Of a DNA stretch of 64,000 nucleotides, positions 21,431 through 64,000 are shown piece by piece. Source of the DNA: Paragordius varius. Lineage: Eukaryota; Animalia; Nematomorpha. Under the pieces are notes generated by a model, which saw only the letters and a program-made list of their open reading frames with translations, was not told where the DNA came from and searched no databases. Numbering within the stretch: the first letter of the stretch is position 1; each line of letters starts with the position of its first letter. The stretch covers positions 12,152,001 to 12,216,000 of the forward strand of contig OZ176051.1 in the NCBI GenBank assembly GCA_964247055.1, given 5' to 3'. Both the position numbers and the translations under genes were made by a program.

Positions 21431-23282
21431 TTTAGTGATATTTTTGAATCAAGCATTTAGCTTTCATCAAAATTTTGTTACAAAAAAAAGTGTTCAAATT
21501 TTGCCATTTTCAGATATGGAGCAACCACAAAAGTGTAAATAGTCTTTCTTATATCACACATGAGCCCCAATACCAAAAGCACCGTCAGAATCTTGATATA
21601 TTTTTCTACGGATTATATATATTTCATCATAATATATTTTATGTAGACTGTGTATACTTTAAACTCTTTTTAGGATATTCAAATTTCAATTCGCTTTTGG
21701 ATATGAAACTAGCCAAAAAATAGTGAAGTGTTAAATGGCTCTAAAACATAATGTCATCGTTTAATCTTAATATTATTATTATTATCCTCTTTGCGTCTTT
21801 TTACGCAGTTCAAACAACCAATAAAAGAGAGATTAACAAACTTGTAGCGGAACGTTATCGGAATAATTTTACTTATCCTTTTTTACAATTAATTTTTAAA
21901 AGTTTTGTGTCCAGAATTAAACCTGTTAGCGAATTTCTCTTTTAAAGTTTCGATTCAATTAACAATTCCTGCATTAGAAAAACACATAGTTATACAGTTT
22001 TCTCACTTTTAGGGTCCAAAATTACAAAGTTTAATAAATCGATTTAAGCAAATAGCCGATTTGAATAAATCAATCAATTATTTGCTTTTAAGAGTTATAC
22101 ATTTAATTAACCATAAATTATTTTAGGGATAAAACATATTGGCGAAAAAGTTTATGAGTTTTTTACAATTATTATACATTTTTTTGAAATCCTCCAAAGG
22201 TAAACTATTTTTTTTATTGTTTAAGTTATTGAATAATCCCTAGGGTACAAGACCACCTTGATAATGAAAGGTTATGCGCGACAAGCACGGTGGAAAATTT
22301 GCTGCGCACTTTTTTTCGAATATAACCTTCAAGATAAATTCATTACTGGAAGTTCCTGATTTATACCCTTTGCATTTCAAGAATGTTCTTTAACAATCAA
22401 GTTCCTCCTTGAATATTTGGATTTTGCGCGTAACAAATGTTTTTGCGTGTAATTATCTATTAATATCTTTATTAATTATTATTTTATTTAATTTTATTTA
22501 ACATTATGTGTTTCCAACTAATTTTTTCCAATTCAACAATATTTCTTACTTTTTAAGATATAAAATATGGAGTTTTATGTTCAAATACTAACTTTAAAGG
22601 ATAATCTTGGATTGTTGAAGGAAACTCTTGAAGTGGAAATGGTATATTAAACATAGCATTTAGAGCAGGAGTCTAACACATGGCGGCGCGAAATTTGGAA
22701 AATACCTAATCAATATTTCCACAATTTGCAAAGGCTGGCAAAATTAAATAAAATTGATATTTCTCACTAAATTTTCCGAATAAGTCTTTCAAATTAGTGG
22801 ATAACTTATATAAATTGGTGGATACCGTATATGTGTTGCCAGTTTCCACAATTTATGCCCCTATATATTTGAAATGGGGCCCTCAATTATTGTGTCAAAA
22901 ATGTCGCCCCTAAAGCCATTCGTATTGCACAAAATAATACCTCTTTGCCCAGGGCTCATGGTGATAAAAAATTGCACAGTTTTGTATTATAATATTGAAA
23001 TCTACGCATATTTAAGTTCGGCGCACCCTACAATATATACTATCGTAAAGATAAATTATGGAAAACCCACGAATTTAATCAAAATGGCATTTAATAATTT
23101 ATTTTCTATATGCGGTCGTCATAGAAACTTTTTAAGGACATTGCTAATTACTAAACCTGAAATATACTTATAAATTACTTTAGCAACTATTCAAGTTAAC
23201 ATGGAATATTCAAACGGTTAGAATTATTAATATGAGATGATAATGCGACCTCGAATATATATATATATATATATATTACCAT

Positions 23283-23492
23283 TTTTCTTGCAAAAACATC
23301 ATTTTTTCAACCAAACCCACCATTTTTTCAAGCAAAGGCAACAACTTTTTAAGCAAAGGCAACATTTTTTCAAGCAAACGCAACATTTTTTCAAGCAAAC
23401 GCAACATTTTTTCAACCAAAGACAACATTTTTTCATCCAAACGCAACATTTTTTCAACCAAAGACAACATTTTTTCAAGCAAAAACAACACT
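23283..23492. repeat. 21-nt tandem array (~10 units, consensus ACATTTTTTCAAGCAAACGCA)
   Basis: Direct repetition is visible and explains the QHFFKQT and MLRLLEK repeat ORFs. It follows a TATATATTACCATTTTT motif resembling the foldback terminus. Confidence 0.9.
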
Positions 23493-23860
23493 TTTTTTAT
23501 ATATATACTGTAGTCATTGATAAAAAATCAATCTACCATTTAAGTGCCTATAATATTCGTTAATTTTAAAAATTGGTGTGCCATTTATGAATTCGACGAT
23601 GACATTTTTAATTTATAATGATATAATATTTTTATATTTAGGCGTTATGATTATCCCTTGAAAATTACATATTTATCTCTAAATCATATCAAATATGTTT
23701 TATATATAAACAAGGATGATTGAATTGGTAACTATATGATCTAAGGTAGTGATAGATTATTGGCGAAAAAACTAATCAATACGGTTTTTATGAGTTAAAC
23801 GGTATTTTACTAGTTCTTTTAAAAGTGAATAAGTTTTCGTTAGGATAGTTGAAAAAAATA

Positions 23861-32210: not shown

Positions 32211-35200
32211 ATGTATACGAATTAAAAAATTAAAGATTTTTGTTGCTAAGGAATAGGATGGTTGCCCTTGCGTAAATCCTATTTGACAGCTCTTAAATAT
32301 AAACCTTTTAAAAGATTTGTATGTACCGCAATATTGATTCCGGTAATAATAAAATGCATAAGCTCCCCACACTTTTGTTAACTATAATTGATTCATAATT
32401 ATATTTCACCGGGTTTTGTTCGTTACGCTGTTGTTTCATTGAAAAAACAACTCCAAAAAGTGGTATATGATCATATTTATGACCTCCAAGAGATATGAAA
32501 AATTCTTGACTTATTTTAAGTGATATTCTTTTCCTGAAAACAATCAAAAAATATTCATACTAATTCCTCCAAATGAAAACCCTTATTAATTGCAATAATG
32601 CACATACCTTTTTATTAAATAGTACAGGGGTGTTCAACACAAATGGCTGCGCTTGCCGCGTTCGATTATATGGGAGTCAATAGATATTTCTGGCTATCAT
32701 ACACAAGACTGTAAAGAAATTACAATAAAAGTACTAATTATTTAAAGTTTTTTTGCTCTCATTGTCAAAACTTGAAAAGCCGCGTATTGATAAAATTTGC
32801 TTAAAAAATAATATGCGTAGATTTTGTGAAAAGCATTTTTTAAAAATATTAAATTTGTATTAGGTGTTTATTAATTCCTCGTGGGTCGCAAAATTATATG
32901 AAAGGGCCGCATGCGGCCTGTGTCTTAAACACCCCTGATCTGATTTAATTTAGTATTAAATGGGAAAACTATTTACTATAAGTATAAAAAAATATATCAT
33001 TTATTACAATTATGTATGATATCTTTTGTACACTTTATTAATTTCATCATAGTGTCGTACAAAACGTATATATGGTTGTTTTTGTAGAGTTTGTGTCGAT
33101 TTTTGCATATTTTATCGTCACTAATGGCATGTTTAGTGTTGGAATACCCAAACAATACATTGTCAAATAAATCAGCTGATTTAAGCTTTCGTGCAAGATA
33201 AGGCAGTGTGTACAATGTGACACAGTCTAATATCTTACACATTGATTTATATAACGAAGTAAAAATTTGTAATTTAACATCACGGTATTCGGGTTCTTTC
33301 GTATCGTCGTTCATCGATGAATATACAAGGCGTAAAATTATACCATGCAGATAAATTGTCAGGTAAAATCTATAAGAACATATATGGATATATATATGTA
33401 TATGAAATATTTTCATATTCATTTTTTGTAAAAAATTACGAGTTAGTGTAAGACAGTATGGTTAATGTATCGTTTTGAGTAAAATATTTGTCCTTATCAA
33501 GGGTTGGTCCATATTTATTAGAGTTGTACGATATACCATAAATTGATAAACATTTTTGCAGATGGTTAAGCAACGTTTCCAATAACACTAAAAGCAATAA
33601 AGTTTGATAATTTCATATATTCTTAAAAAGTGTTTCTTTCTATTATAATTTTTAAAATAAAAAATAATAATTATACCAGGATCCATCGTTTTTTCACACA
33701 TTAATTCCATTTTGCATTGCTGGTATAAGGTATAGAAACTTATGATATGATAACACGTATCTAATGGACTAATACGAACTAATTTTGCAAATTGTTCATT
33801 TTTCCTATTTTCTAAACCCGAAATTTTTAAAGCATCATTTTCATTGTTAAGCATATCATTTGAGGATGAAAATTTAAGAGAGTTGGCCTGATTTAATAAT
33901 CCCATAAAGCTATTATTATTAAACAAGTTTGAGTTGAATGATTTGTTAGTAATGGGTTGATTTACTAACTTGAAAGAACTTTCGATTTCTTCGGTTACAC
34001 CTTTAGCTTCTGAGCAACATACCAAAAAAGGCGTACAATCAGGCTCAGTTTTCTGACCCTAAGAAAGCATGATAATATAAATTGATAAATTAACGTTAAA
34101 TTTTCAACAAAAATGTAAATATTTATAATGTTAATCGACATACAGGAGCATAAAGTGTGGCGTAAGGATCAAGACCCAAAACGTTATTGTATTCCAAGAA
34201 AGCGAGACTCAATAAATCACTCGTTTCGCCTCCCGATGTATACAAATTTGAGCGTGATTGTTGAGTTTGTGATTGTCTTAACATGGTTAAACCTATGCTT
34301 TGGACCCAATTTAATTTATAGTAATCATAAATGTTTATGGGATTATTTTTTTCATCTTCCTCAATAGTTTGATGGCTGTCCTGGTGCGACAAATATTGTA
34401 GAAAAGATGTTTCAGGATCCAAAATATCCAGCAAATCACGATACTGACCCTTAAACTTTTTCCTGTGTGCGTTAAGATTATTTTTTCTAAAGCTTAAGTT
34501 TATCTCATTATCGGACATATTGTTTGCCATGATATTCGTTTTCGATGAGTATTCATTCTCTAACGAGGAATCATTAGATGATGATAAAATTACATTCGGT
34601 GCAAATTGCGTTTGACATAATAACAGGGCATTGCTTATAAATATTATATATGTAAAATTAATTACCAATAAAATTAACAAATATAAATTTCTTAAAAAAC
34701 ACAATTATCAAAAGCCTCTCATAATTCATAATTATTTATTAAAAAATCCTATATTACCGATAATTCCCTTCATTGCACAATGAATCACAAGCAGAGGCCA
34801 AGTTATAATCGGTAAAAAAGGATGTGGCAATTTTTTGGGGAAAATGCTTGTCATTCACCTTTTTAATAATTCTGTTTTGTCTTGATTGAGCATCATTTGT
34901 GCTATTGTATTGAGTTATCCAATGTAAAAACTTTAGAATGTGATTTTCATTTCGTAACGTAAATTCTACCGCATAAAAGCATATAAAATGGCTAATTACA
35001 ACTGATTAGAGAGAAATTAATATAAAAATTACCTTAAACATTATTTACATATAATTTATATTTTAACAGGACAAAAGAAGTTTTAATATTTTCTAAAAAA
35101 TTTCTGGTCTTTGACTTTTCACATATAAATTACATATTAAAATTGTGTGAAAATACGTGCACTATATACAATAATCGCACAAAATTATGGTTTATTATAA

Positions 35201-37695
35201 AAAAAATTTAAATTTGAGTTGTGCTTTTATATATACTTTTTACTCCACAAATTAAAAAAATAAAAAAAAAGTAAAACCATCAGTGGATGTATTGTTTTTT
35301 ACATTTTCCAAACTTTCCGTTTCATCCATACAATTAAATATGGTAGGTGAATTTTCATTATAAGATTTTTTCTCCGAGCGTTCAGAAAATAAAATTTTAC
35401 ACAGGGACCATATACGCATAAATGGCCTCGTTATATTATTATTATCGCACAAAAAGTTATCAAACATGAAAGCCATTTCAAAGCTCAATGCTAAGAATTT
35501 TTCAGTCTTTCCTTCATACAAGCAAATTAATAGTTGTTCATGAAGATTATTTTTTGTGAGCTGGTGTGTTATGACATCCAGATTTTGATTTTTAGTTATA
35601 TTTTGGTGACTTATTTCATACATCCATAATTGATTCGGTTTATTGGAAGTGGGAAATAGATTTCCACCCGGAAAAAATGATGTTTCAAATCGTGACGTTA
35701 AACACAGTTTAATACCGACTGTGGATTGACTTGCAGTGGTAAATATCCAAGCAGGCCTTGAACATTTTGGAAAAAATGGATTAAAGCGCTTTAACTTTGT
35801 TTTAGGGGATAATGTAACGCCGTGTACTAAAAAATCCTTATTTTTAGGCCCTTGGAAACAATAAATATCCTTAAGGGTAGCCAATGGTAAAACATAGTTA
35901 ATCGCATTAGATGAGGGTAAAATTATTTTTGGGCCTCCCTGTTTCACTGATGACCCGATCGTTGTTCCATTCAAATCTATGTGTGTATTAAAGTGCAAAA
36001 TGTAAGAAAAACATATATTTATATGGTAAAAATATTTTAAGTCGAAACTAAATATTATCTGTTAAATTAAAACAAATAATTATTTTAATTTTAAAAAAAT
36101 TCGCTTTAAAACCAAATTTAGACCCCTGTACCGTTTTAAAAAAGGTTTAAAATATTTTTCCGGATTTGGTAAGATAGTAAAGTTAACACCTAGTGCTATA
36201 AAAATAGGCAACAAAAGAGATTATTAACTCCTGACAAAAAGAGCTCATTAAATTTCTATTTTATTGTTTATACATTTAATAAATAATATTATAGTCATAA
36301 CCATAAAAAACATCATTAATTTTATAAAAAATAAATCAAAATAATCTAACCGTTTCATAATTTAGTTTAGTACTTCACCTTTTTACTTTTTAGGGTAATT
36401 TTATATCCCAGAGCTTATTGTAAATAAACTTCTGTTTTAAAAATTATTTTAATTAAAATTTTTCAAACATTGTTCTCATTCATTAGATTAAAATCTAATA
36501 TTTATTACAGTTTTGGGACTTCTACTGAAATTGAGACAGCTTCAAAAAACGATTGAAACAAACAGCTGTTATAAAATCAAAATACACATTTTGAAAGAAT
36601 TTAGCCTAAAAGCTTCAATTAATTATTTACATTTTCCAACCACAATATACATTTATTTGCCTGTTGCAGTAGCGATTTATAGATAAAAATTGCGTCAAAA
36701 AAATTTTAGATGAGGATTTATTTATAATTTTATAAATTTTTTTGTATAATACGCCTAAAAGGCTAAAGAAAGATATTTTAGAATTCGGCTTGATACCTTA
36801 AATACTTATTGTAATTTTATAAATCGCTCTGTGTAAAACTATCCTTAAAGGTAAAGTTAAGTATAGACTGCAATTAATTTAATATTGAACAGTTAACAAA
36901 TAGATTTTAATATGAAGAATAAAATTACCATATATTTAATTTACCTTCAGAAACGCTAGTATCCATATCATTAACCAAATGTTCATTCTTCTGTGGTAAA
37001 TTTGGCCAATCGCTTTTTTCTTTTTCATACTTTAAGCCAAATGCATATGGATCATAAGGTTCAAAGAAAGATTTTTTTAAGAGTTGTGTAGTTTGATTGG
37101 TGCAAAAACTTTTACTAAAAAAATCCATAGTAGAATCCTTTTTGTAAATTAAAGATGTATTATCATTCATTTTAGGTGATACATTAAAATCTGTGTTTAA
37201 ATCATTTACGTTGGTTGTTTCAGCTATTTTTTCAGCTCGATGACTTTGTAAACTTTTTCTTGCCTAAAATAATTTTTCATATAGACTAAAAAACCTGTGG
37301 TGATTCTAAAGGCTTGAGTTGCGAATTAGTTTCCTCTTCATCATCACTATCCTCGTCAAGCCTATAACGGGAAAAATGAGGGACCTTAAAATCATATAAA
37401 CACATTACCAAAAATTGTGAACCTTGAATTTTTAAACCCTTGAAAGGTTTATACTTTTGGGAGTTGCCTTTCTTTAATATACAATTGACATGTTTATCGG
37501 TATTTATATTAATGAGAGCGCATGTATGAAAATAGGGGGATAGATTATCTGATACATTAATTTCTCGATCTCCAATAATGACTAATGTAAAAATTTAATT
37601 TAACCATATTTTTTCAAATTCAAAGGCGTATCGCATGAACCATTTCTTACATAATGAATTTGCCCATCTTTATTCGCTAATACAAACTTTGGCAT
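32169..37695 (-). CDS. NUP96: Nup96 with a short N-terminal Nup98-type autoproteolytic (peptidase S59) leader and no FG/GLEBS region
   Basis: Exons 37695-37605, 37581-37295, 37263-36945, 35976-35278, 34965-34758, 34633-34144, 34058-33677, 33587-33440, 33369-~33020, ~32533-32410, 32381-~32169 (last junctions tentative). Motifs FKVPHFSRYRLDEDSDDEEE (cf. FKVSHFSKYGLQDSDEEE), FFPKCSRPAWIF (cf. FMGRSFRVGWGP), IWSLCKILF, ASACDSLCNEGNYRNALLLCQ (cf. SEACSLAQQSGDHRLALLLSQ). Confidence 0.85.
32625..32937. mobile_element. hAT/Charlie-like MITE in a Nup96 intron
   Basis: TIRs CAGGGGTGTTCAACACA / TGTCTTAAACACCCCTG (15/17) and an internal GGGCCGCATGCGGCC motif. TSD not recognisable. Confidence 0.75.
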
Positions 37696-37754
37696 GTTTA
37701 AAATTTGAACGATAGACGCATGGTATTTATATGAATGTATTATTATTATAAAAT
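37696..37754. promoter_or_regulatory. Putative 59-nt bidirectional promoter/5'UTR region between the Nup96 and METTL6-like start codons
   Basis: Minus-strand ATG at 37695-37693 and plus-strand ATG at 37755-37757. Promoter function is inferred from geometry only. Confidence 0.55.
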
Positions 37755-38740
37755 ATGTCTGATCCAAGGGACAAATTGATTGAACAAAAAATAAAAAATA
37801 AGAAAACAATGGCCCTCACCAATTGTCAAACATATTGGGATAAATTTTATTATCGAAATTCAGATCATTTTTTTAAAGATCGTTTTTGGGTTGAAAAAGA
37901 ATTCGATTTTGACGTAATTTTACCTTAAATTAAGGTTGATGGTGGTACTTTACTAGAAATCGGGTGTGGTGTCGGTAACTTGATTATTCCTTTATTGCAT
38001 AATATACCAAATTTGCATGTCATAGGCATGGATTTTTCTGAAAAGGCACTAAATATATTACAGGTTATTGCTGTTTTTATTTTTAGTCTAAATTAAAAGA
38101 ATTAAAATTATCCGATAGATGTGACCTACAATTATGTGACATTTCTTGTGATAAATTGGAAAACCTTCGCACTTATTTATCTAATACGAACCGTAAAATT
38201 AATTATGTATCCGCTATTTTTACTATGTCAGCTATTTCTCCGGAATATCATAAATTGATTGTATCCAAAATATATAGTGTAATATTTATTTTATTTAATA
38301 ATTAATATTTACCCAAAATATCCAAACAATAATCAATTTTTATATTTGGTAAACAGTTAATTGATGATAAAGCTTCCATATATTTTCGTGATTATGGGTA
38401 CCACGACCAAGCTCAAAAACGATTTGAAAAAACATCAACCATTAGCGAAATAAAAGAACGACAATATATGCGACAAGATGGAACTCTTTCTTATTTTTTT
38501 ACAACTTCCGAGGTTGATTCCATTTTTCAAGCTTTGCCTAAGAATTCAAATTCAGATCCGGCAAATAATTCATACGATAATACTAATGGCAATGTCTTTG
38601 TCAAAGATTCGAATTTTATTATAAATGGCAAATGTAAATACGTTCAACACGAGTTAACAAATGTAAAAGAAGGTATCTTTAATATACCACGAATATTTGT
38701 ACAAGCCAAGTATGAGGTTGTGCGCAAATACGATTCCTGA
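37755..38740 (+). CDS. METTL6: tRNA N3-methylcytidine methyltransferase, METTL6/METTL2 (Trm140) family, 287 aa
   Basis: Exons 37755-37913, 37935-38063, 38087-38278, 38357-38740. Motifs YWDKFYYRN...FFKDRFW..KEF, LLEIGCGVGN, DFSEKA, IFTMSAISP, FRDYGYHD, YMRQDGTLSYFF. METTL6 versus METTL2 cannot be settled by eye. Confidence 0.88.
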
Positions 38741-41152: not shown

Positions 41153-47614
<6,462 letters not shown>

Positions 47615-61246: not shown

Positions 61247-62946
61247 GGTTGGTTGGTTTTTCCTAAGTCGTAAACGACTTTTTGGATAGAGTTATAAATA
61301 TTTCTTTCCATTTTTTTTATCTTTAACCGCTATATTGAGCTCTTTCAGTGTCATTTTGGTCTCTTCTTTTATCGTATCCAACCACCTCATCGGTGGTCGG
61401 CCTCGTTTCCTTTGCCCTTCTACCTTCCCAATCATTGTACTTTCTCCAGAGAATTCGATCGCATGACATGACCAAAATATGTTAACTTTCTTTTTAGAAT
61501 CTCCATAATGTTTGTTTTAGGTTTTATTTCTGTAGTTAGATTTCCATTCTTAATTTTATCCTTCCAGGTGTATCCTAGCATTTTACACCAGCAACTCCTT
61601 TCAAAAGCCATGAGCCTTTCTTTGTCCCTTTTTCCAAGAGTACAACTCTCACATCCATATGAGGTGACCGGGAGAAACAGTAGAGTAATGTTTTTTTGGT
61701 TTCAACTCCTGCGCTTTTGTTTTTCCAAATCTTTAATATGGTCATCGCTTCTCTACCCAATCCTATTCTCTTTCTGATGTCAGGAGTTGAAGACCTATCC
61801 TCTGAAATTATTGCGCCCAAAAACGTCAACTGTTTAAATATTCTATTTGTACTCCTTCTATTATAATTGTGGGCTTTTTTCTTGTACATAATATTTTGGT
61901 TTTGTTAGGATTAAGCCTAAGACCATACCTCAAACTTTCCTTTCGAATCTCTTCAATCAATTCCTTCAAATCATTTGCACTTTCAGCTATAAGAAAGGTA
62001 TCGTCTGCAAACCTTAAATTATTGATTGTTCTCCCTCCTATTTTTACTCCAATATTTTTACCGTCCAACTTCCTCATTATCATTTCTGTGCACATATTGA
62101 ACAGATAAGGGGATAAGCTACACCCTTGTCTGACTCCATTCAAGATAGGTATTTCGTCTGTGTTCCCCGCTGATGTTCTAATAATCGCTCTTTGTTTTAC
62201 ATAGAGAGAGCGAATCAATCTTATTAAGTGAGACGATACCCCTAGTAACTTTAATGTTTCCCACAAGGAGTCATAGTTGATTGAATCGAAGGCTTGTCTG
62301 TAATCAATAAAACACATGTATAATTCTTTCTAGAACTCTTTTGATGTTTCCATTATCCTTCTCATGTTTGAGATATGGTTTCTTGTGCTTTTTCCCTTCA
62401 TAAATCCGGCTTGATTTTCTGGTATTTCTGTCTGTATGATACTGTGCATCCTGTTTTGTATTACATTTAGTAAGACCTTACTAGCGTGGCTAATAAGAGA
62501 TATGTTCCGATAGTTCTCGCATTGGAGTACATCCCTTTTTTGTATATTGGGAGATATACAGATGATGTCCAGTCGTTTGGCCACTCACATGTTTCCAACA
62601 CCTTTTGACATAACTTGTGTAACGTTTCTACAAAAATAGCTTTTATGAACTCTATTGGGATATTGTCTAATCCCATCGCTTTGTTGTTAGGAATTTGTTT
62701 TAAGGCTAATTCAACCTCTTCTCTTAATATATCTGGATCACGTTCTTCTTCTTTAATTGCAACACCTTTGCTTGAGGAACCTGATAGAGTTTTTGGGTGT
62801 ATTCCTTCCATCTTCCTCGTACTTCTGTTTGTTTGCACAATATGGTGACATTCTCTGTTTTAATCTTTTGGGATGATATAAAAGGTTTATGAGTCATTTG
62901 CTTCAGTTTCTGGAACATTGGTTGCATTAATCATTTTTTGTTATTT
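61247..62946 (-). mobile_element. 5'-truncated, frameshifted RTE-clade non-LTR retrotransposon (RT domain to 3' end)
   Basis: RT motifs NYRNISLISHASK, QAGFMKGKSTR, FIDYRQAFDS, GVRQGCSLSPYLFN, LRFADD. C-terminal MIGKVEGQRKRGRPPMRWLDTIKE and an (AACC)3 microsatellite tail at 61247-61258. Multiple frameshifts. Confidence 0.92.
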
Positions 62947-64000
62947 CCACACAATAGGAGGTTATACACATGGACCTCTCCATGTGGTAATAAGAATCAA
63001 ATTGATTACATAATATGTTCTCAAAAATGGAAATGCTCTATAATCGATACCAAAACAAGCAAAAGCAGCGATTGCTCTAGCGATCATGAACTTCTAATAA
63101 CTAAAATCAAACTTAAAATAATTAAAAATAAGGTTAAACAGATATACAGATATGACATTCGGAACATTCCAAATAGTTTTAGAACAGAAACCAAAGATAG
63201 ATTAGGAAGATTGGACAATGGATGTAGCTCAGAACAATTATGGGGAACGATAAAAATGTTGCTAATGAAGTGGCAAAAGAAAAAGTGCAGTGAGTAAAGA
63301 GGAAAGATAACAAAATATCTGAAAAGAGTATAGAGATAGCAGAAAAGAGGAGAAAAGCTAAATCAAGGGGTGATAATAAAATGGTAAAATTATATAACAA
63401 AGAATTTCAACGACAAACAAGGAAGGATTATGAAGACTTTCTTAATAAACAATGTCTGGAAGTGGATTTAAATAACAAAAAAGGATTAATGCAACCAATG
63501 TTCCAGAAACTGAAGCAAATGATTCATAAACCTTTTATATCATCACAAAAGATTAAAAAAGAGAATGGCACCATATTGTGCAAACAAACAGAAGTACGAG
63601 GAAGATGGAATACACCCAAAAACTCTATCAGGCTCCTCAAGCAAAGGTGTTGCAATTAACAGAAGAAGAACGTGATCCAGATATATTAAGAGAGGAGGTT
63701 GAATTAGCCTTAAAACAAATTCCAAACAACAAAGCGATGGGGTTAGACAATATCCCAATAGAGTTCATAAAAGCTATTCCTGTAGAAACGTTACACAAGT
63801 TATGTCAAAAGGTGTGGGAAACATGTGAGTGGCCAAACGACTGGACATCATCTGTATATCTCCCAATATACAAAAAAGGAGATGTACTCCAATGCGAGAA
63901 TTATCGGAACATATCTCTTATTAGCCACGCTAGTAAGGTCTTACTAAAAGTAATACAAAACAGAATGCACAGTATCATACAGACAGAAATACCAGAAAAT
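62941..64000 (+). mobile_element. Second RTE-clade LINE segment in opposite orientation (end of endonuclease to start of RT), running off the window
   Basis: RRLYTWTSP...KNQIDYII...SDCSSDHELL endonuclease end. 63470-64000 is an inverted near-copy of 62414-62946. Confidence 0.9.

Follow-up and report, generated by a model that had tools for sequence, protein, structure and literature searches.

The 64,000-nucleotide stretch of Paragordius varius DNA analysed here (contig OZ176051.1, positions 12,152,001 to 12,216,000 of the forward strand; this whole stretch is hereafter the window, and positions are counted from its first letter) has a G+C content of 27% over its 64 kb and carries on its minus strand a nine-exon gene that is likely to encode the nucleoporin Nup96, preceded by a leader derived from the autoproteolytic (peptidase S59) domain of Nup98. 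Specifically, a predicted open reading frame of 998 codons, confirmed by script, runs from the ATG at 37695-37693, the first in-frame start codon of the gene, to the TGA at 32999-32997. The frame was traced downstream by eye, after which the joined exons were checked by script for frame, length and stops. All introns begin with GT and end with AG, and their lengths are 23, 31, 968, 312, 124, 85, 89 and 70 nt. Residues 1-100, upstream of the predicted cut, are called the leader, and the remainder the body.

37605 to 37695, minus strand: exon 1, with the ATG; 30 codons plus 1 nt, leader residues 1-30
37582 to 37604, minus strand: intron 1; 23 nt, GT..AG, phase 1
37295 to 37581, minus strand: exon 2, residues 31-126; covers leader residues 31-100, the H-F|S site and, after it, the acidic tail
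37370 to 37378, minus strand: codons of H99-F100-S101; predicted site of autoproteolysis, with the cut falling after F100
37331 to 37372, minus strand: S101-E114 (SRYRLDEDSDDEEE); putative counterpart of the Nup96 N-terminal strand and acidic run, aligned to frog and human Nup98-Nup96
37264 to 37294, minus strand: intron 2; 31 nt, GT..AG, phase 0
36945 to 37263, minus strand: exon 3; 106 codons that probably encode a disordered region at the N-terminus of Nup96
35977 to 36944, minus strand: intron 3; 968 nt, GTAAAT..AG, phase 1, the weakest link of the model
35278 to 35976, minus strand: exon 4; 233 codons
34758 to 34965, minus strand: exon 5; acceptor uncertain, the alternative at 35001 giving 12 extra codons
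34144 to 34633, minus strand: exon 6; 163 codons
33677 to 34058, minus strand: exon 7
33440 to 33587, minus strand: exon 8
32997 to 33369, minus strand: exon 9, with the stop codon TGA at 32999-32997

A first-pass annotation of the same DNA had placed the gene start at ATG 37695 and the HFS triplet at 37378-37370, with its F as residue 100, and the sequence confirms all three. Stop codons make up about 7% of codons on the minus strand, and 100 open codons before HFS would arise by chance with p ~5e-4, a value somewhat inflated by the choice of intron 1; exon 2 alone has 72 open codons (p ~0.004). The part of the predicted protein that follows the cut comprises 898 residues, a size that fits Nup96; the human protein has 937.

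The evidence that carries the assignment lies at the boundary between leader and body. Exon 2 reads ...QGSQFLVMCLYDFKVPHF|SRYRLDEDSDDEEE... (the bar marks the predicted cut site), so that the triplet His-Phe-Ser of peptidase S59 (PF04096) is present as H99-F100-S101, and HF is followed directly by the S-[KR]-Y-x-L pattern and acidic run with which Nup96 starts. The HFS triplet alone is uninformative, with 22 occurrences in the six frames of the window against 17.6 expected; the extended motif F.V.HFS[KR]Y.L occurs once in the window and in none of 200 simulated windows. Profile, sequence and fold searches were run exon by exon. A comparison of exon 2 with 177,635 PDB sequences (phmmer, E<=10) returned only 7fik_G from frog and 7f60_C from human, both of which are Nup98-Nup96, with residues 80-123 aligned to positions 795-843 of the former and residues 92-116 to positions 872-895 of the latter. 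In these alignments HFS falls on the cleavage site of the frog and human proteins, and the junction FKVPHF|SRYRL with its acidic run places SRYRLDEDSDDEEE against SKYGLQDSDEE... of both. Exon 2 and Nup98-Nup96 thereby have in common the pattern QG.QF...FKV.HFS.Y.L followed by an acidic run. The weight of this match comes from the family that was found and the residue that was aligned, not from the E-value. On this sequence comparison, we accept the junction, and with it residues 83-114, as homologous to the Nup98-Nup96 cleavage site.

The FG region of Nup98 is not encoded in the window. Across all six frames of the 64 kb, stop-free segments hold at most three FG dipeptides each, and GLFG does not occur in them; the whole 998-codon model contains two FG and no GLFG, and thus lacks the FG/GLEBS signature of Nup98. 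Similarly, neither strand of the 26 kb upstream contains an FG-rich segment or one that resembles the autoproteolytic domain, and a search for an upstream minus-strand exon that might supply the missing start of this domain gave no candidate. The earlier reading that no FG/GLFG exons lie upstream therefore holds, with at most three FG per segment and no GLFG in all six frames.

These observations are consistent with a scheme in which translation from 37695 would yield a 998-residue pre-protein whose first 100 residues would be a remnant of the autoproteolytic domain of Nup98, from its C-terminal two thirds. The gene retains the H-F|S triplet, the S-R-Y-R-L strand and the acidic tract, and the FG/GLEBS part of Nup98 would be encoded elsewhere. 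Most likely, an ancestral Nup98-Nup96 gene would have been duplicated, after which one copy would have lost everything behind HF and the other everything ahead of the middle of the autoproteolytic domain. Because both daughter genes are proposed to retain part of this domain, duplication with complementary loss would be the simplest history and is favoured over a simple break. In the known Nup98 protein, the domain cuts in cis and anchors Nup98 through either the flexible N-terminus of Nup96 or the propeller of Nup88 (PMC11148069). Here, we infer that the leader would be a propeptide, able to fold onto the junction and to cleave the F100-S101 bond through the usual N-O acyl shift. Cleavage would free an 898-residue Nup96, whose new N-terminal strand would be bound in trans by the full domain of the separately encoded Nup98. 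That Nup96 keeps H-F-S-R-Y-R-L together with the acidic run suggests continued use of the docking strand, and the open 100-codon leader suggests a self-removing propeptide that exposes S101, as in Arabidopsis Nup96, which removes an autoproteolytic domain from its own N-terminus during maturation (PMC13370221). Taken as a whole, the statement that this is a stand-alone Nup96 gene including a self-cleaving leader is about evenly balanced between being right and being wrong. The part of it that makes the leader a working minimal S59 module, cutting at F100|S101 without the N-terminal third of the domain and several loop residues, is on its own rather doubtful.

How much of the S59 domain the leader may preserve can be followed along its length. 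It has 100 residues before the cut, compared with the ~140-150 residues of the canonical domain, and its last hairpin carries a four-residue deletion relative to solved Nup98 domains, to which this hairpin is similar at the weak E-values of 0.71 and 1.1. From the F-T-I-G-R-K-G-Y-G strand on, we take the leader to be collinear with the human domain, which is a lead and not a test; on that alignment it would have shorter loops and would presumably lack ~35-45 residues at the start of the canonical domain. Candidates for the catalytic Lys and Asn are K60 (in a T-D-K motif), N63 and N70, in a stretch that cannot be aligned reliably. For comparison, the catalytic K240 and N248 of an Entamoeba protein precede its His by 54 and 46 residues, respectively (bioRxiv 10.64898/2026.09.13.750810).

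A number of results weigh against this interpretation. The two PDB matches of exon 2 are weak (E 0.71 and 1.1) and not significant alone, and exons 3 and 5 give unrelated PDB matches at a similar E level. PF04096 is undetected by Pfam in exons 1 and 2 singly (E<=10), with the domain split by an intron, and exon 1 alone has no Pfam or PDB match. The first-pass annotation had proposed to compare a predicted structure of the leader with the S59 fold; the AlphaFold model of exon 2 alone is all-beta with a pLDDT of 53, which makes it unusable, and searches with it (Foldseek against the PDB, VIA-align) found generic beta-sandwiches and no S59 fold. A word-index protein search with exons 2 and 4 gave no match, although its length filter would mask full-length relatives anyway. 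About one third of the canonical domain is gone from the leader, which may abolish catalysis. In the body, PF12110 is undetected in any of exons 4-9 singly (E<=10), where the region would span four or five exons, and exons 3, 4, 5, 6, 7 and 9 return nothing or chance matches from the PDB (phmmer), with no Nup96 or Nup145C among them. Exons 4 and 6 are poorly recognized by the ESM Atlas and have no usable match there, and the AlphaFold model of exon 4 alone reaches a pLDDT of 39 and is likewise unusable. Over all exons of the gene, Pfam returned nothing beyond noise at E<=1 and at E<=10. Pfam does detect other genes of the window in single exons (SH2 at 5e-16, kinase at 2e-12), so the failure with Nup96 and S59 reflects divergence and domain splitting rather than the method. 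Two of the original claims stand in part. Of the mini autoproteolytic domain, residues 83-114 are homologous to the cleavage junction, while the first ~80 residues are not recognized as S59 by Pfam in single exons or by fold searches; an S59 origin is proposed for them. Of the Nup96 gene, the intact 998-codon frame and the Nup96 size hold, while the body is not matched to Nup96 by any statistical test in single exons. Exons 4-7 presumably carry motifs of human Nup96 in the order that would be expected, which, too, is a lead and not a test.

An exhaustive HMMER search of 1.84 billion proteins gave a single match for exon 4 (P0001), which was rejected as spurious, with a score summed over repeats. 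This protein of 1591 residues consists of ~20 copies of a ~70-residue unit (FDFSWHPD...FIHQFGTQWQRTGGPKYVVPGATEIKY), belongs to no Pfam family and is unrelated.

The alternative that survives best accepts the same gene and the same origin and differs in the state of the leader, which would be an inactive relic: a 100-residue extension either kept on the protein or trimmed by other proteases, with Nup98 then docking elsewhere, for instance on Nup88. In addition to the loss of about a third of the domain and the fact that Pfam does not see S59 in single exons, several loops seem shortened, including the four-residue hairpin deletion. Cleavage is, moreover, dispensable in other systems, as S. pombe is viable with an uncleavable Nup98-Nup96 and Trypanosoma has a naturally uncleaved form (PMC4483485), and a cleavage-deficient Arabidopsis Nup96 was functional in one assay (PMC13370221). 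However, H, F and S and the following Y and L are all retained, and the leader frame is open despite the 7% of stop codons, whereas in a dead relic one would expect either the triplet or the frame to have been lost. We regard a relic as rather unlikely.

A less probable alternative holds that exons 1-3 (~238 codons) do not belong with the rest, but form a decaying or separately expressed duplicate of the junction, in which case exons 4-9 would be an unrelated fast-evolving gene, or that the locus duplicates part of an intact Nup98-96 gene located elsewhere. The frame of exon 3 indeed continues past the proposed donor to a stop six codons on (...GKLNIW), the 968-nt intron 3 is far longer than the others, and no search identified exons 4-9 as Nup96. 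Yet exon 4 has no ATG over its first ~125 codons, so that an upstream exon is needed, its acceptor phase matches the exon 3 donor, and the combined length behind the cut is in keeping with Nup96. On balance, this explanation is unlikely. Intron 3 is ~40 times as long as the shortest introns of the same gene and contains no convincing open reading frame; its repeats are AT-rich chance pairs only, and an Rfam scan of 35200-38000 gave no match.

Somewhat more improbable still is an incomplete 5' end, in which the start of the domain or FG/GLEBS exons would be spliced in from beyond the neighbouring gene, making this a conventional Nup98-Nup96 gene with a huge first intron. The features that bear on this possibility lie just upstream of the start codon.

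37696 to 37754, no strand: gap of 59 nt between the divergent ATGs, a shared promoter region, read from the sequence
37755 to 38740, plus strand: METTL2/6/8-like S-adenosylmethionine (SAM) methyltransferase gene, divergent, which fills the space needed for upstream Nup98 exons

Ahead of the ATG the reading frame stays free of stops over 35 codons, and there is an AG near 37760, which could serve such splicing; however, 35 open codons have a chance probability of ~0.07. The upstream DNA is occupied by a retrotransposon and no fewer than two further genes, introns in this region are mostly 21-124 nt long, and the 26 kb upstream offers no FG-rich or autoproteolytic-like segments on either strand. 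The other minus-strand open frames upstream of the Nup96-like ATG show no nucleoporin features. Finally, the HFS context might be a chance resemblance in an unrelated protein, in keeping with the 22 HFS triplets in this AT-rich DNA and E-values near 1, but an 11-position motif and an acidic run match together, both PDB matches are to the predicted family at the predicted residue, and the motif appears in 0 of 200 simulations, which leaves this explanation very far-fetched.

The proposed Nup96 gene with its S59-derived leader has its closest counterpart in plants. It is established that plants have a separate Nup96 with a cleaved domain and that the split is tolerated in fission yeast. Specifically, the Arabidopsis Nup96 locus lies apart from the Nup98 genes (PMC1560137), and S. 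pombe is rescued by Nup98 and Nup96 expressed from separate loci (PMC4483485). The first-pass statement that plants encode Nup96 separately with its own autoproteolytic domain is thereby borne out (PMC13370221, PMC1560137). Arabidopsis Nup96 (MOS3/SAR3) and its rice orthologue are like the gene proposed here in having their own locus and an N-terminal autoproteolytic domain, which is cleaved in plants (PMC13370221, PMC1560137). The Arabidopsis domain, however, is recognized by PF04096 as one of three S59 proteins (PMC1560137), whereas the leader here has 100 residues and is unrecognized in separate exons. Because the lineage here is an animal one, the split would be independent of that in plants, and convergence with the plant split would be a reasonable inference.

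With the Nup98-Nup96 precursors (human Nup196, S. cerevisiae Nup145, S. pombe Nup189, C. elegans NPP-10 and Drosophila Nup98-96), the predicted protein shares ...FKV.HF|S.Y.L, an acidic run and a C-terminal protein of ~900 residues (PMC2150585, PMC4483485). The precursor genes, in contrast, carry FG/GLFG repeats, GLEBS and a full domain of ~140-150 residues upstream of HF; the gene here lacks the repeats and GLEBS and would keep about two thirds of the domain. Short Nup98 isoforms, namely the human short mRNA and the spliced S. pombe nup189 isoform with a 33-residue tail, demonstrate that the halves are separable in expression and that the domain cuts off any sequence placed behind HF (PMC4483485). 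They are a mirror image of the present arrangement, as they join a complete Nup98 to a Nup96 stub, whereas here a Nup98 stub would precede a complete Nup96. That the module can be maintained in an uncleaved state is illustrated by Trypanosoma brucei TbNup158 and further naturally uncleaved Nup98-96 proteins (PMC4483485; bioRxiv 10.64898/2026.09.13.750810). Unlike the gene described here, in which HFS is intact and the FG region absent, these proteins have no HFS and are still fused to the FG region. In the literature, we found no report of an animal with a separate Nup96 layout or of a 100-residue version of the domain, which is weak evidence.

Fungi, and those animals that have been studied, produce Nup98 and Nup96 from a single precursor, and this coupling has been read as a means to coordinate assembly of the barrier and the scaffold. 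If the proposed reading is true, the uncoupling of the two in an animal, with the cut site kept on Nup96, would present a natural experiment on the need for the linkage, and it would also raise the question whether a free Nup96 N-terminus is the real target of selection. Furthermore, a self-cutting leader of 100 residues would define the minimal core of the S59 fold. It would be the smallest natural nucleoporin autopeptidase and the first animal Nup96 propeptide, with Nup98 recruited purely in trans. The significance is limited by the facts that plants share the layout, that yeast genetics tolerates the split, and that both cleavage and transcript are predicted here.

The surroundings of the gene are compact. 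Its ATG had been reported to lie 59 nt from that of a divergent METTL6-like gene, which is correct: the neighbour starts at 37755 and is METTL2/6/8-like, with matches to SAM-methyltransferase Pfam families, specifically of its second exon to Methyltransf_12/25/31. With 59 nt between the divergent ATGs, the 5' untranslated regions of both genes must be either tiny or overlapping the neighbour gene. A minus-strand upstream open reading frame of seven codons (37698-37721) ends 2 nt ahead of the Nup96-like ATG. The first intron of the methyltransferase gene (37914-37934, plus strand) is 21 nt long, of the GT..AG type and in phase 0, and connects ...EFDFD with VDGGTLLEIGCGVGN; alongside the introns of 23 and 31 nt in the Nup96-like gene, it shows that ultrashort introns are the local norm. 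Further along the plus strand, at 41179-46700, lies a multi-exon gene for an SH3-SH2-tyrosine kinase (CSK-like), with Pfam matches of 4.8e-16 for the SH2 exon and 2.4e-12 for the kinase exon; such a gene fits an animal (holozoan) genome. The end of the window, at 61435-64000, is occupied on both strands by the reverse transcriptase of a non-LTR (long terminal repeat) retrotransposon (RVT_1, 3.8e-28). Near-identical pieces of it at 62470-62859 (minus strand) and 63557-64000 (plus strand) represent either a rearranged element or two elements. On the other side of the Nup96-like gene, a tandem repeat at 23231-23560 encodes QHFFKQ-type units in one frame and is open in several frames on both strands.

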